Source of the DNA: Podarcis vaucheri
Lineage: Eukaryota
DNA: 64,000 bases
Strand: one strand, 5' to 3'
NCBI GenBank assembly: GCA_965113315.1
Contig: OZ220363.1
Of the stretch, positions 41,301 to 56,744 are shown piece by piece. The position numbers and the translations under genes were made by a program. The notes below the pieces were generated by a model, which saw nothing but the letters and a program-made list of their open reading frames with translations, ran no database searches and was not told the DNA's origin. Within the stretch, counting starts at the first letter, position 1; the number at the start of each line of letters is the position of its first letter.

Positions 41301-43029
41301 AACTTAAAGTGTCCACCTTACAAGACAAGAGACATTCCACAGTCAATTGGCTGACCTAGCCACATGAGATGGGCAGATATTGATCTGAGCCTTGGTGGGG
41401 GAATCAGTTTAGAGAAACTTGGCAGGAGCCTCTTGGTATGCTTTGTACTTACTGGAGTCTGAGAGTGGCAACAATTCAGCCTTGGCTGCTGGCTGCTCCT
41501 TTCATACTAATGTTTGACCATTCCTTCACAGTTTCTCTCTTAGTTAAACAAAATAGTTTCTCCATGAGATTCAAAGGCATTCTCATTCAAGGGAAAAAGA
41601 TATTGCAAAGGCTGTTTGGAAACAAACATTTTGCTTGGCTCCTGGTATAATTGTGGTACAGTGGTACCTCGCAAGACGAATGCCTCGCAAGACGGAAAAC
41701 TCGCAAAACGAAAGGGTTTTTGGTTTTTTGAGTTGCTTCGCAAGACAATTTTCCCCATGGGCTTGCTTCGCAAGACGGAAACGTCTTGCAAGTTTGTTTC
41801 CTTTTTCTTAAAACCGTTAATACAGTTGTGACTTGACTTCGAGGAGCAACTCATAGCACGCGGGGTGGTAGCCTTTTTTGAGGTTTTTGAAGACTTTGGT
41901 GATTTTTGAAGCTTTTCCAAAACTTTTCCGACACCGTGCTTCGCAAGACGAAAAAAACCGCAAGACGAAAAAACTCACGGAACGAATTAATTTCGTCTTG
42001 CGAGGCACCACTGTATACACTCTAAACCCACTGGTATTTTGATAAATGAGGAAAATGCCCAGAATATAATGTTTGAAGAACAAAGTGAAGGTCTTCAAAA
42101 AACCTGCTCCAGAAGACCCAACCCCATTTGTTGGTATTCGTACAGCCCTTTGGTTATGAGAATTGAGGAAACTAGCATGCTGTCTTTATGTCAAATGAAT
42201 TTTAAATGTATATCAAATGATTTTGGGGGGTGGGAGTGATGCTTCTAGCTGCTGGACAGTCTCTTGGCGATGTCCTGTTGAATACAACATTCTTTCCCTT
42301 GCACTTTTTGGCTAATCTGCTGTATACCACTTAGACATTTTAAACAATAGTCTGATAATGAACATCCTATTCTAATATCCTAATAATGTAGGATGTTTAT
42401 GTGCAATTACAGCGATAGGGAGCTGCAGGGACACACACAATGGTATTCAGGAGTTGGGGGAGGAGACATCCAGTTCATATTGTGTGGGTTCTACTACATA
42501 CTGTTTCCTCTTTTCTTGCAGAGTGTAATACTCTGAACGGATTAGTATCAGAAGTGTTCATCCGTTTCTTTGTGGAGACGATCGGACACTATTCCCTTTT
42601 CCTCACTCAAAATGAAAAGGCTGAGCGAGTCTTCCAAAGAGAAGCTTTCCGCAAATCTGTGGCTTCAAAGAGCATCCGCCGTTTCTTAGAGGTCTTTATG
42701 GAATCTCAGATGTTTGCTGGGTTTATCCAAGATAGAGAACTCCGAAAATGCAGGGCAAAAGGTAAGGCCTGTTCTCTCAACTGTGTGATGGCCTTTTCGT
42801 TTTTTAATGTATTGTAGTACTCATAATTTGCAACTTACAAGCATTTAGCTTGTGCGCATTCAGCTTACACACTTGGCATTTATTTTTAAAGGGAGCGGGT
42901 GTCTAGGAAAAAAGACTTTGGCAATCCCACCCACCATCTCCTAACAGGAGAAAGGCTGATGAATGCTGGGATGAATGAAGACATGGAACATTTGAAAATA
43001 AGGCTTTTGAAATACCCTTCAGAAAACAA

Positions 43030-46344: not shown

Positions 46345-47743
46345 CAGGTTTCCTATCCCTGTATTAAAAGATGTAGCAGCGACTATTAGCTTAGATGGGT
46401 TGAGAACTTCATAGACAATTGGTCTACTTAAAAGCAAAAACTTCAAAGTAAATGTTTGTTCATCAGGTCATTTTTTCATTGTTCACAGTGACTTTCTGCA
46501 TATAAAAAAACAGGCCAAACAAAAGAATAAATGGACACGAATCTGTCACCAGAAATGGCAATATTAAAAAGGGATTGGAGGGCATTTTAACTTTCTAGGA
46601 CAGCATGCCTGACCTAAATGCCCCGATAATCGATCAATGGCACTTTAAAGGGAGACTGCAACATAAAACTGGTGAACTACAATTGATCAAGAGGGTCAAT
46701 GTTACCAATGGGAAAAAAAAAACAATCACACTACATGTGTTAATTGGCATACTGATGTCATGATTACCCAGTTGGATTTGTGTGCGTGAAAATGGCCACT
46801 ATTAATAACGCAATTATCACACTGTATTTTTCTGCATTTCCTTTCCTTCGAACCTTACTGTTTAAGGTTCCATACCACCATCGGTACTAGTGGATGTTCT
46901 GCACAATGCCTGTTCCTTTAGTTATGAAATATCAATGTGGTGCAGTGGTTAAATGAAGAATCATCCATTGGGTGGGTGGGGGCGCTATGGGCACCTCTTA
47001 AGAGACCACATCCCATAACCTTGCATGCACCCCCCCCCAACCATCTCCCCAATATGAGTGTTAAAGTCAAGCGCTCACTGAATCCGCTATAGCCTGCTCC
47101 ACATTAAATCCCACACTTAAACCCTTCTACACGTTCTGCCTCACACAGCCCCCTACGCAACTCCACACCCCACTGATATCGCAGACACACACCAAGCACC
47201 ATACTGAAATTCTCACTGATAACACTTCCAGTATTTATTTTCTCACAGAAACACAGTGGGGTTCTTATTCTTATTGTTCTTATTCATCAAGAAAGCAAAC
47301 TAAACCCATGCACTGCACACCAGCTTTTAACCTTTCTTCAACCTCTTTTAACAGCCTAAATTGTGTCCCGTCCCCCTCTTAAAACCCTCAAGTGTTCTCT
47401 TCCAATAACCAACGTTACTCCTACAACGAGCAACAAGACTCTTCTGTAAGACAAGAGGGCACGATCATTTCAGAACAACGCAACGAAAGGAAGCCTGTGG
47501 CTGCGCGCCCTGGCTAAATTTTTGCATCGGCCACCTCTACTTCCGCCCCTCATGCCCCGCACATGGAGGCTTACTCAGAACCGGAAGTGAGGCATGAATG
47601 CGTGAGCGTGAGCTTCGTTGACCCATTCCCCACCCCCAACCCCCGCCGCGCGAGACATCGCGAGAAGAGCGCGCTTCCCCGGTTCTTTTGTGAAAGCTCG
47701 CGAGAGAGGCCTCTCTCTTTCCCTTTGACTCTGGCCCAGCAAG

Positions 47744-52644
<4,901 letters not shown>

Positions 52645-52670
52645 ATGATTTTTCTATGTACCCAGGCTTC

Positions 52671-52676
52671 AATAAA
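52671..52676 (+). terminator. RPL27A poly(A) signal
   Basis: AATAAA 26 nt after TGA, typical short RP 3' UTR. Confidence 0.85.
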
Positions 52677-53311
52677 CACAATTTCAGCTGTGTATTCATA
52701 AGCTTAAAATCTGAAGTGTCTCACTGCCAATTTGAATACTCCTAACTTGATTTTTTTTGGGGGGGGGAGGAGAGGTCCACCGAGAGAATATTTTTTTTTG
52801 TTCGTTGTAAAGATAGGCTTAAGCACATGAACAATGTTTGGTGAAATTCATTGTGTTTGGAGTGTTCTGCATGTGAGAGAGCACCTGCACATGTGCAATT
52901 CAGAGACGATACCAGTGTTTTTTGTCCCTACTGGAAATGTATCTTTCTGTGCCAAGTGGTTGTGGTTGCCCAGAATTTTGATTGTATACCATATATCATG
53001 CCATAGTCTTAAGATGACCATGTTCACATTATTCTGTTTAATGCATAGGCTTTTTAGGTAGTAAACTATGTGCAGTTCACACCAGCAAATGTGAACAAGA
53101 ACAAACTAGCTATATATTAACTTTAAGGAAAAACAAAAACATTGTACAAATCTAGGCAGCTATTTAAGTTGAAATGCTTTTTCTTCAGAATTGAACCATT
53201 CCCTATGCAGGACATAATTTGTGTTAAAATCCATGAAACATACAGTGGAACCTCTGGTTGCGGACGTAATTTGTGACAGGCAACCCACAGCGTTCGCATC
53301 CTGAAGTGCTG

Positions 53312-53570
53312 CAGACAGCTTCCGGGTCATGTGGCCAGCATGACTAAGCCGCTTCTGGCGAAACCAGAGCAGCGCACAGAAACGGCGTTTACCTTCCCGC
53401 CGGAGCAGTACCTATTTATCTACTTGCACTTTCGATGTGCTTTTGAACTGCTAGGTGGGCAGAAGCTGAGACCGAACAACAGGAGCTCACTCCGTTGCAG
53501 GGCTTCGAACTGCGACCTTCTGATAGGCAAGTCCTAGGCTCTGTGGTTTAGACCACAGCGCCACCCCCCA
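53312..53570 (-). mobile_element. Sauria SINE
   Basis: Same core as 4662-4864; preceded by a Tigger-type end at 53243. Confidence 0.85.
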
Positions 53571-53846
53571 AAGCAGCTGAACAAAAGCTCAACAACTTTG
53601 ACCTGAACCCCCCCCCCCCAAAGGGGTAGATCACTGCCAGTTTTTAGCTCTCTTGAGTATATTGCAGTCTCTTGGGAGTTGGCCACCCCTAATATAAAAT
53701 ATCTAAGGGAGGTTGCAAAGACATATATAACAATATGCAAGTTTGAATAATATTACAGAATTCATCCTCCACTGGAATGCATTCCTCAAAATTATATCCT
53801 CATGTAACAAACAAAACCCAAACAACTTCAGCTTTTACACAAACTT

Positions 53847-53852
53847 TTTATT
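53847..53852 (-). terminator. Poly(A) signal of the minus-strand RPL27A-derived unit
   Basis: AATAAA on - strand followed by GU-rich element (gttgtttgggttttgtttgtt). Confidence 0.65.
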
Positions 53853-53980
53853 AATACTTGAGACGAAAGTTAACAATAACTCTCCAAATTTATGGATCCA
53901 CTCTCCTGCTGAACACTTGAAAAGCAGTTGCTTAGGCACTTTCCCCTTCATAGTAATCCTGAGAAGAAACAAATTTGCAA

Positions 53981-54068
53981 AGTCAGTGAATAAAGATCAG
54001 TTTTTCTCTCCGAGTACTATAGCACACCACAATGACTGAAGACATCAAGATGTGACTCTAGTCTCGAT
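53981..54068 (-). ncRNA. SNORA3: Second SNORA3 copy: intact 5' hairpin and H box, 3' hairpin truncated, no ACA box
   Basis: Reverse complement is 51/58 identical to the 5' hairpin of the 50049 copy, then H box AGAGAA (54009-54004) and 19/20 match to the start of hairpin 2; homology stops ~20 nt before a splice acceptor. Confidence 0.85.
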
Positions 54069-55729
54069 TAATTATAGGTACACAAGCTTCTTACTCATTT
54101 ACTGTTTCAACCCAATACATTAATTCTGTCTAGAACTGTAAACACATAATATTTTATTTCACAAACAGAAATATTTATGAAAAACCAAGTGTTAATAAAT
54201 GTTGATATCTACAATACTGACCTTATGCTTTAATAACAAAAGCCATGCTTTTGGTTATCTCACTATTTTTAAGGATGTACTTCCATGGTTGTGCACTCTT
54301 CCAACACTACCCAGGCTTCTGGGTACAGTATTTCACATTTCCCTAAAATATAAGTAATGAAGATTATAAAATAATCTTGCAGATTTTCTAAATAATGAAA
54401 TATGCACAAAGAAAGCCACAGAATCTAGAATGCTGGGATTCTACATGTTTGATGTATAAAGTTAAGCTGTTGCTCTCAAAAAATTACTACAGGACACAAT
54501 AACTGACAATATATAAAAGTGACTAAACAATTATTCTACACAGTTTTCACAGCTGCAAGTTGTTTCAGGAAAGGGTTCTCATTAAGGCCCTTCAAGCATT
54601 AAGCACATGAAGCATGGGGATGTGCTCACAGGCTTCACCCTCTCTTACATGGTCCCATCACTGACCTCACAGCCCTTTGGGAGCTTGTTCTACTTGTTTA
54701 GGTTCCCCACACAAGTTAGGGCCACTATTGTGCAGGCTTCCCACTCTAGTACTTCAGCCCTCAAGGTATCCAGCGGCAATATGAAGAACGGGGCAGGCCA
54801 ATGAGCACCTCCTCATCCATGCAGCAATAACCATGTGATGGTGGGCGAAGAAATCAGAAATTCCTCATTGAATTTCTCAACCACCTTGCTGTCTGACTGT
54901 ATATGAGATTAATCGTTTACTCTGTGCCAGTCAGGAACAAGCAGAAAACACACTCTTCAATAACTAGGCAAGGCTTTTTCATTGGATCATTTATTGGTCA
55001 AAGGCAAACAGAGCTTTCTTCTTTAAGACTATTTTCAAATTAATCATTTCAGTTGTAAGCCACCGGCACAAACAAGAAAAGCATATACGAATACAATGAA
55101 CCTGTACTTGTTTTTTCGACATTAAAAGACTTGTTGGACAGGGCCAGAGATCCATGGGCATCCAGAATTTTGGACTGTAGCCAATGTTAGTCCTACTCAC
55201 AGTTAATGTACCTAAATCAGTCACATCTATTAATTTCAATAGGTCAACTGTATATCCTTGACTAAAGCCTTTTGTTTCCAGCTGGGGCCAAGCAAATGCT
55301 TCTGGAAGGCATATACAACAGTCCTTTCCTATCATGTGCAGAAGCATCAGGTATACAAAGTAGACTGCCTCTGAACGTAAAGATTTAATTCATCTGCAAC
55401 AGTTTTAATAGCAGCTAGTATCTATAAATTTTGCAAAGCTGGCACAAACCTGGACTTGACGCTACAGCCATCGAGCCGCATACGAGGGGGAGCCCATTCG
55501 CCGCCTACAGAACACAACTTCAGTTCGCTTCCCTTCTGTTCCTGGTCACAGGCATGGCCGAATCGCCCGATAAATTTACTTATCTTCCTCATCGTGAAAG
55601 CCTGGAAAGATTAAAAACAAAACCACTGTACTTTGCACGCTTAAGGGTGGAAAACGGAGGTTGTTTTACCCAAATACTATTTATTTTTCTTCTTTTAAAA
55701 ATAATTTTTTTAAAAAATATCAATTAAAT

Positions 55730-56300
55730 AAAAGCCCCCGTGAGACAGTTGCGGAGACCGCCCAAGACTCTCACCAAAAAAAAGATTGCGCGCCTGCTTG
55801 AACTTATTCGCTCATTTTAAACCCTGCTCCCCGCTACTCACCACGTGAAAGGAAGAAGGGAAACAGGAAGCGGAAGAAGACCTTCTTCAAGGAACCTCCC
55901 ACAATGCTCTCGGGGTGCGTGCGGGGGGGGGAGGGGCACATAGAACGGGAGAGAGAAGTGGAGCTCGGCCATTCCGAGAGCGGTAACACAGCCTGCACTT
56001 CCGGTGGCCATTGAAAGTCGTCACACTGTGGTGTACTGTGCCGCTCCAGCCCTGTGGCAGCTCTATGATAAATGCCCGCTTTGCATTGGAGGGGAAGGGT
56101 GGGGGCGGGAAACCAATTCAGGGGTATACCGGAAGTTTTCGCTCTCATCGAAGTGAAATGCATTTAGCGTCAGGAAGGCGGTGACGTCACCTAGCTTTTG
56201 GTCTTGCCACTCAAGTGGGAGGAGAATTCAGCAGATCCCCAGTTGAGGGCGGGAAACCGTCCTCAGCGCAAAAAAAAAAAAAAAGCAAGCTCCTAACACG
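55730..56300. promoter_or_regulatory. CpG-island promoter, probably bidirectional
   Basis: CpG-rich; ETS sites CACTTCCGGT 55996-56005 and CCGGAAGT 56129-56136 in opposite orientations; full CRE TGACGTCA 56182-56189; GC boxes; CCAAT 56113-56117. Confidence 0.8.
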
Positions 56301-56744
56301 TACCATTGGCTGATATATTTTTTTAAAAAAAGGCTTCGCCTGTGGAGGTTTTCCCCTCTCCTCCCTTGAGCATAGTGGGCGGTAGCTGTGCTTTCAGTCA
56401 AAAGTGCAATCTTGTGGCACCTCAAACACTTACAATTTATTAGAAGGCAGTTGCTTCTTCGCTTGATAACGTCACTGGAGGATACAAAATTGGAATAAAT
56501 CCCAGCCAAGTTATTTTGTTGTCCTTTTGTATCCAGCAGGGTCCCTTGGTCCTTGAACTGTATGTTCCTCGGAGTGCAGCCTTGCAGTTCAGGCATGCTC
56601 AGAAGCGAGTCCTTTTGATTTCAGGGGTACTGACTCTCTGAGGCTGCACAGCTATACACATCTGGGACTATGTCCTATTGAACTGAGTGAGCAGAGACTT
56701 TCCTCTGAGTAGAAACACCTAGCATTGGCCTCGGGCTGTTGATA

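Follow-up and report, generated by a model that had tools for sequence, protein, structure and literature searches.

An inverted, decayed copy of RPL27A in Podarcis vaucheri: a probable transcribed, spliced, non-coding unit and possible former host of a SNORA3-family snoRNA

A 64,000-nucleotide stretch of the Podarcis vaucheri genome (assembly GCA_965113315.1, contig OZ220363.1; hereafter the window) carries an intact gene for the ribosomal protein RPL27A on its plus strand at 47.7-52.7 kb and a decayed copy of that gene on the minus strand at 53.8-55.9 kb, the two lying tail-to-tail about 1.1 kb apart. Our analysis indicates that the copy is very probably a transcribed, spliced, non-coding unit derived from RPL27A. 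We assign a probability of roughly 60% to the fuller statement, in which this RPL27A-derived non-coding unit also served in the past as the host of a small nucleolar RNA (snoRNA). According to this reading, an unprocessed, inverted copy of RPL27A would have lost its reading frame while its RNA polymerase II unit stayed active, with transcription starting in the old promoter region at 55776-55903, splicing joining newly recruited donors to the acceptors inherited by exons 2, 3 and 5, and the RNA ending mostly after the AATAAA at 53852-53847 to give a non-coding RNA of about 0.5 kb. During most of the period after the duplication, the copy would have been kept as host to a second snoRNA of the SNORA3 family, and this snoRNA would then have lost its second hairpin and ACA box in the genome of the window, leaving a current transcript that is probably a host without a working guest but with an intact promoter. 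A previous sequence-only reading of this region had proposed an RPL27A gene turning into an SNHG-type long non-coding RNA (lncRNA); the non-coding, transcribed and spliced character of the unit held up, but its SNORA3 guest proved to be truncated.

Homology to RPL27A and loss of the reading frame

Its sequence identifies the minus strand at 53.8-55.9 kb as a copy of the neighboring RPL27A, collinear with it but decayed. The reverse complement of 53700-56100 was compared with 47500-52900 by blastn, and Smith-Waterman scores were set against empirical nulls from the rest of the window, using 5000 random null windows. Four collinear blocks exceeded chance and followed the parental order, namely exon 2, exon 3, the 5' half of SNORA3 and exon 5. 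The exon-2 block, which includes the acceptor (55613-55553, minus strand, against 49167-49227), reached a local score of 24 compared to a null maximum of 16.5 (0/5000; blastn E 2.8e-4). Its exon part is identical at 33 of 51 positions without gaps, exactly as the sequence-only reading had described it, and 10 of the 12 bases 5' of the exon match as well (taatctttccag versus taatcttttaag). The exon-3 block (54342-54264, minus strand), which was absent from the earlier reading and newly recognized here, scored 28, a value reached by 0 of 5000 null windows, and its acceptor and donor are both still ancestral in sequence. The 5' half of SNORA3 (54069-53981, minus strand) aligned at 86.7% over 90 nucleotides (nt) by blastn (E 6.6e-22). 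The exon-5 block with its acceptor (53978-53860, minus strand), also claimed previously, was confirmed with a score of 22.5, which 3 of 5000 null windows reached when the comparison was position-restricted; taken alone and unrestricted against the whole candidate, this block did not rise above the null. A collinear alignment to RPL27A outside the snoRNA, which the sequence-only reading implied, was found, and the exon-2 and exon-3 blocks each beat all 5000 null windows.

Across these blocks the exons are 66-70% identical to RPL27A, the acceptors of the copy and the intact gene fall in the same alignment columns, and the introns of the two cannot be aligned. An old duplication is suggested, given that the exons differ at about one-third of their sites and the introns are unalignable. 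The copy thus shows what defines an unprocessed duplicated pseudogene, several collinear parental exons with introns between them. No further RPL27A pieces were found in the 64-kb window, where the remaining matches were transposon matches only. An exon-4-like block that had been proposed at 54890-54770 (minus strand) did not survive: it failed under two scoring schemes, and its score of 16.5 (P 0.024 per window, 226 windows scanned) lies within the null. Its place between the blocks of exons 2 and 3 also breaks the gene order, and in the transcript it is intronic, covered by low-depth contigs only.

The loss of coding capacity asserted by the earlier reading was borne out at several points. 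The start codon has changed from ATG to GTG, exon 4 is absent, an 11-nt deletion in the exon-5 derivative puts a KGKVPKQ remnant out of frame, and the exon-3 derivative (exon c below) contains stops in all three frames. The parental frame is lost, as in a pseudogene, and a Pfam search with the leftover open reading frames (ORFs) of the copy returned no match. The exon-2 derivative (exon b below) has no stop in the ancestral frame across all of its 50 codons, and the frame from an ATG at 55592 in this exon runs to the exon end, where the matching frame of exon c reads E-M-stop. The exons were translated singly and the border between exons b and c was crossed by frame bookkeeping alone. The spliced RNA is likely to be prone to nonsense-mediated decay (NMD), given that its only open frame is closed three codons after entering exon c, with over 100 nt still to go to the last junction.

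Transcription, splicing and transcript ends

Sequencing reads were placed on 52640-56700 from the contig sets X1, X5 and X6 (organism A) and from X23, a run of raw single-cell RNA reads (organism F). Twelve RNA-like contig sets of organism A, from three studies, held 13-23% of the words of the 2.4-kb stretch, a share that fits exons only, and DNA-like runs of four species labels held 54-98%. The strand control for X23 at the 3' untranslated region of RPL27A gave 917.7 on the plus strand and 0.39 on the minus strand. Over the copy, X23 reads lay on the minus strand only, at 44.9, 8.7, 4.6, 4.4 and 7.9 from the last-exon bin towards the 5' end, with about 0 on the plus strand. In X23 the copy reaches roughly a few per cent of the RPL27A mRNA level, an approximate figure corrected for the exonic share of the bins. 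Together with the GT..AG junctions described below, which contigs of two further studies show, these stranded reads support the minus-strand transcription and splicing that had been predicted. The features of the transcription unit are as follows, with splice borders marked by a slash.

55996-56004, minus strand: CCGGAAGTG in a CpG-island-like promoter region (motif count, spacing to the first intron base)
55845-55880, minus strand: pyrimidine tract of 36 nt with at least 33 pyrimidines, a putative terminal oligopyrimidine (TOP)-type start region (sequence)
55775-55803, minus strand: 3' end of the first exon, or a mini-exon, joined to exon b (X1 joint; donor G/GTGAGA at 55775/55774)
55450-55601, minus strand: exon b, from RPL27A exon 2 (homology; contig pieces 55449/55450-55602 in X1 and X6)
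54222-54342, minus strand: exon c, from RPL27A exon 3 (homology; contig pieces 54222-54341 in X1 and X6)
53835-53958, minus strand: exon d, the last exon, from RPL27A exon 5 (homology; contig pieces ending at 53959 in X5 and X6)

The first joint, 55602->55777 (X1, depth 149.8), corresponds to a GT..AG intron at 55774..55602 on the minus strand, once the G common to both sides and a T-run shorter by one T are allowed for. The junction 55842>55601 expected from the sequence-only reading was absent among the joints listed, exon b being joined instead from the donor at 55775/55774. The second joint, 54341->55449, has CT..AC ends (GT..AG on the minus strand), corresponds to an intron at 55449..54343 and was present in X1 (depth 149.8), in X6 (33.5) and in two raw minus-strand reads of X23. 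Exon b uses its ancestral acceptor ccag/G; its ancestral donor is destroyed, and a new donor, CAG/GTTTGT, lies 88 nt downstream. Exon c likewise uses its ancestral acceptor, ttttag/G. Its ancestral donor AAATA/GTGAG persists at 54264/54263, and the contigs continue for 42 nt to AAG/GTCAGT at 54222/54221, with those of X1 and X6 leaving the genome exactly at 54222. Exon d uses the ancestral acceptor ctcag/G, in agreement with the acceptor predicted at 53958, behind whose AG the X5 and X6 pieces end at 53959. The last intron is placed at 54221..53959 given that the pieces end at 54222/GT and AG/53958. The ancestral acceptors of exons 2, 3 and 5 are all in use, and every used donor is new. The earlier suggestion that splicing was maintained while the exons drifted consequently applies to these three acceptors, in exons that are about 67% identical to RPL27A, but not to the donors.

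At the 3' end, the AATAAA is followed by a GU-rich run, as had been noted before. The X23 minus-strand depth falls from 44.9 in 53864-53999 to 2.7 in 53728-53863, just past the AATAAA, which fits the predicted poly(A) site; the exact 3' end probably lies near the prediction, and some contigs read on to 53664-53720. The GT..AG junctions, the stranded reads and the depth drop describe a spliced and presumably polyadenylated RNA with no conserved ORF. When organism A is compared with the window, 9 of 274 positions differ in exons b and c together and 19 of 1053 in the introns, with exon b being the fastest-changing piece (8/154). These two exons are no better kept than the introns, suggesting that the mature RNA sequence is under no visible constraint.

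At the 5' end, X23 minus-strand reads were present in the bin 55768-55903 and depth was zero upstream of 55904. The transcription start is bracketed to 55776-55903, an interval that contains the 36-nt pyrimidine tract; no start pile-up is listed there, and contigs cannot show a start. In 5'TOP genes, transcription starts at a C that is followed by an uninterrupted run of 4-15 pyrimidines, and the transcript of the copy may have a start of this type. The tract itself, reported by the sequence-only reading, is indeed present, and the two strands of the 64-kb window together contain just five tracts of this kind, this one included. It is followed by an ancestral-looking donor, GTG/GTGAGT, at 55842/55841, and the neighborhoods of the first donor are alike in the copy (TGGTGAGTAGCG) and in intact RPL27A (TGGTAGGTAGCG). 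Homology in exon 1 and the promoter is weak, with a P of ~0.02 for the exon-1 local alignment, and the promoter-to-promoter alignment scored 12, no better than shuffles or GC-rich tiles. The motif CCGGAAGTG, which we take to be an ETS/GABP-type site, has 3 matches in the 64-kb window compared to 0.17 expected, and another of these lies at 47581-47589 in the promoter of intact RPL27A. The distance from the motif to the first intron base is 166 nt in the intact gene and 163 nt in the copy; this motif and its spacing are all that the two promoters have in common. The surrounding 55701-56400 has a GC content of 0.51-0.56 and a CpG observed/expected ratio of 0.65-0.74, making it one of the few CpG-island-like stretches in the window.

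On the far side of this CpG-rich region, the plus strand of 56120-56250 contains the promoter-like motifs CCGGAAGTT, TGACGTCA (56182-56189) and GGGCGGGAAA, and a divergent promoter at this position is possible. No reads were seen at 55904-56700 in four runs, and hence no divergent transcript. No TRIM66-like or other coding exons were recognizable by eye in the stop-to-stop frames of the plus strand at 56-64 kb.

SNORA3 elements and the case for a former host gene

Human RPL27A hosts SNORA3A and SNORA3B/SNORA45 (PMC13736004, PMC1636440), the latter described as SNORA45 within RPL27A (PMC1636440), and SNORA3A, which is RPL27A-hosted in human, resides mostly in ribosomal-protein-gene hosts across vertebrates (PMC13736004). 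Two SNORA3-related elements were found in the introns of the copy.

53962-54069, minus strand: truncated SNORA3 copy in the last intron (blastn; Rfam RF00334, 54.1 bits against a gathering score of 51)
54453-54524, minus strand: second, decayed SNORA3-like relic in the b/c intron (blastn, 72% over 75 nt, E 5.3e-6)

The SNORA3 copy that had been reported in the last intron is present but incomplete. Its 5' hairpin, an H box (AGAGAA) and 19 of the 20 nt of the 5' strand of hairpin 2 are retained. The element then breaks off 19 nt before the acceptor of exon d. The remainder of hairpin 2 is absent, as is the ACA box, and 33 RF00334 model positions of hairpin 2 are replaced by 9 nt. The hairpin-hinge-hairpin-tail architecture of RF00334 is consequently broken by an incomplete 3' hairpin and a missing ACA, and the last intron does not hold a complete snoRNA. 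The surviving strand of hairpin 2 includes CTGAC at 53986-53982, about 24 nt from the acceptor, which could now act as a branch point. The remaining 5' hairpin folds like that of the intact copy, with identical runs of 18 and 16 nt flanking a variable apical stem in which a compensatory change (GAUA/UAUC to GAUG/CAUU) has occurred. Two short identical segments around a diverged stem would point to past selection rather than to one gene-conversion tract. The exons are less conserved than this intronic snoRNA, given that the SNORA3 copy is 87.5% identical to the intact one and exons 2 and 3 are 67% identical (Fisher P 7e-4). The second relic was also recovered in a three-way alignment and had no Rfam match at E up to 1; intact RPL27A has no snoRNA at the corresponding position, and the relic could go back either to another ancestral SNORA3 paralogue or to a duplication within the locus.

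Intron contigs of organism A (X1 and X5, from two studies) match 54236-53978 and then continue with 185-210 non-matching letters. They part from the window exactly at the truncation point, so organism A probably has a different, perhaps complete, sequence there. With its unconstrained exons, its short ORF of the NMD type and an intronic snoRNA as its best-kept part, the unit resembles a snoRNA host gene.

Several points weigh against the reading of the copy as an RPL27A-derived transcript and former host. That the X1, X5 and X6 sets are RNA is a guess, and they stem from a related species rather than from the source genome. The X1 contig places 27 letters at 55803-55777 with 20 unplaced letters upstream, the X6 contig has 48 unplaced upstream letters, and a mini-exon model would require an implausibly short intron of 39 nt; a species difference in sequence is an alternative cause of the unplaced first-exon letters. 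The junction between exons c and d was drawn from piece ends and is absent among the joints listed. Host function at present is doubtful, given that the hosted snoRNA is incomplete in the assembly, and a promoter retained for other reasons could alone explain continued transcription.

The last of these points leads to the rival explanation that survives best, which we regard as tenable but on balance doubtful: the copy is a functionless transcribed pseudogene whose surviving CpG-island-like promoter fires and whose remaining splice sites are used, with no selection today. Its promoter, with ETS and cAMP-response-element-type sites, may be shared with a divergent neighbor, and the opposite side of the CpG-rich region indeed carries TGACGTCA and the other promoter-like motifs at 56120-56250; however, no divergent transcript appeared across 55904-56700 in the four runs. 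This explanation would also account for a snoRNA without hairpin 2 and ACA box, for the move of all donors to new sites and for the loss of exon 4, but three ancestral acceptors and the promoter have survived despite an exon identity of only ~67%. The 5' half of SNORA3, with its compensatory change, has moreover been kept better than the exons (P 7e-4). Exons that are no better conserved than introns between two species are what a functionless pseudogene would show, yet unconstrained exons are typical of snoRNA hosts too, and this point does not discriminate. A recently orphaned host and a mere transcribed pseudogene are not distinguishable with the present data.

A more far-reaching version of the host interpretation, which we consider rather unlikely, is that RPL27A originally resided at the decayed copy, which would have kept its tail-to-tail position relative to the DENN-domain neighbor. 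Its inverted duplicate would have taken over its function, and it would survive as a TOP-driven, non-coding host of a second SNORA3-family snoRNA that sister species still have complete and that broke only recently in the genome of the window. Very improbable, by comparison, is a small protein made either from the ATG 55592 frame of exon b (the old exon-2 frame, MRKISKFIGRFGH...) or from a 40-codon frame in exon d. The transcript is fairly abundant and exon b has stayed open over its 50 ancestral codons, but Pfam gave no match, the frame is closed by the E-M-stop of exon c, exon b is the piece that changes fastest between species, and a 3-codon upstream ORF may come first if the first exon is contiguous. 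A dead, unexpressed pseudogene, or an equally unexpressed set of random matches surrounding a retroposed snoRNA fragment, could appeal to exon-1, exon-4 and unrestricted exon-5 matches that are individually within the null and to a stretch that no indexed run on record as RNA holds, but it is refuted by exon-2 and exon-3 blocks that beat every null window, by their collinearity with acceptors at homologous positions, and by minus-strand reads and GT..AG junctions that include raw reads of a run recorded as RNA.

Comparison with known units and genomic surroundings

Non-coding snoRNA hosts share TOP promoters and regulation with ribosomal-protein genes. To our knowledge, the origin of these host genes is largely obscure, and the classical ones have no visible ancestor. 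As a class they are TOP genes and targets of NMD (PMC4233243, PMC6954239). The RPL27A copy is like GAS5, SNHG1/UHG and SNHG3/U17HG in giving a spliced, probably polyadenylated RNA polymerase II transcript without a meaningful ORF, in having poorly conserved exons and an intronic snoRNA sequence that is best kept, and in having a pyrimidine tract at its presumed start and a short ORF that ends far before the last junction. It is unlike them in that its coding ancestor is legible (RPL27A exons 2, 3 and 5) and adjoins it, its TOP start is putative, and its snoRNA is truncated in the genome of the window.

Xist, which derives from Lnx3, is a lncRNA that is a fossil of a coding gene. That lncRNAs can be fossils of protein-coding genes was described by Hezroni et al. 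(2017; PMC5577775), and the route through duplication and pseudogenization is little studied and hard to quantify (PMC5577775). Like those fossils, the copy shows leftover exon similarity, reuse of ancestral splice sites and promoter, and a lost ORF (PMC5577775); they are mostly unitary losses, whereas here a duplicate pair retains one coding member. In the literature we found no description of a decayed RPL27A unit or of snoRNA hosts derived from ribosomal-protein genes, only general background. As an intron-bearing, expressed duplicate with a lost start codon, exon loss and frameshifts, the copy is also like transcribed unprocessed pseudogenes. Ribosomal-protein pseudogenes are, as far as is known, overwhelmingly processed and intronless, and an intron-bearing, spliced and snoRNA-carrying copy is unusual among them. 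Compared to intact RPL27A, the copy shares exon order, acceptor positions, the spacing of the ETS site and a SNORA3-family element downstream of exon 3, and it differs in lacking the ATG and exon 4, in its frameshifted exon 5, its new donors and its truncated snoRNA, and in carrying an extra decayed SNORA3-like relic between exons 2 and 3.

The copy may represent an intermediate state in which the ancestor is still legible, with the promoter region and three ribosomal-protein-gene acceptors in use alongside new donors, one lost exon and a snoRNA sequence that is the best-preserved part. The locus could serve as a model for the transition from coding gene to non-coding host and for the order of decay. 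Should the more far-reaching reading hold, with the copy as the original locus, the birth of a non-coding snoRNA host from a ribosomal-protein gene could be traced directly here. ORF-based annotation misses units of this kind, and unprocessed ribosomal-protein pseudogenes may merit scrutiny as sources of lncRNAs and snoRNAs.

The intact neighbor, read exon by exon, encodes a complete uL15 protein of 148 residues. Its features and the closest recognized domain upstream are listed here.

47746, plus strand: end of RPL27A exon 1 (ATG/gt)
49179-49242, plus strand: RPL27A exon 2
49524-49599, plus strand: RPL27A exon 3
50049-50179: full SNORA3 in intron 3 of RPL27A (Rfam, 95.8 bits)
51060-51234, plus strand: RPL27A exon 4
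52516-52644, plus strand: RPL27A exon 5
42440-42817, plus strand: dDENN-domain ORF upstream of RPL27A (Pfam PF03455, E 1.5e-13)

The DENN-domain gene lies on the plus strand and is tail-to-tail with the decayed copy, not with intact RPL27A. Human RPL27A and ST5/DENND2B are tail-to-tail, an arrangement with which a decayed copy in the ancestral orientation and an intact gene that arose as the inverted duplicate would agree. Intron 4 of intact RPL27A contains, at 52345-52419 (plus strand), the first ~37 nt of U2 small nuclear RNA (Rfam U2, 54.8 bits, with a real match at the 5' end only). A perfect 19-nt direct repeat (GAAATATTTTGCTTTTGAT) borders this piece at 52345-52363 and 52401-52419, and the arrangement suggests that a truncated U2 was retro-inserted here and duplicated its target site. 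Between the convergent genes, 53300-53600 holds a tRNA-derived repeat resembling a short interspersed element. RNA-like runs give it a summed contig depth of ~1e5, and raw reads fall on both of its strands. GGGGATTCGAACC is part of the loose-end consensus, and the read-through contig of RPL27A (52646-53353) ends at this repeat.

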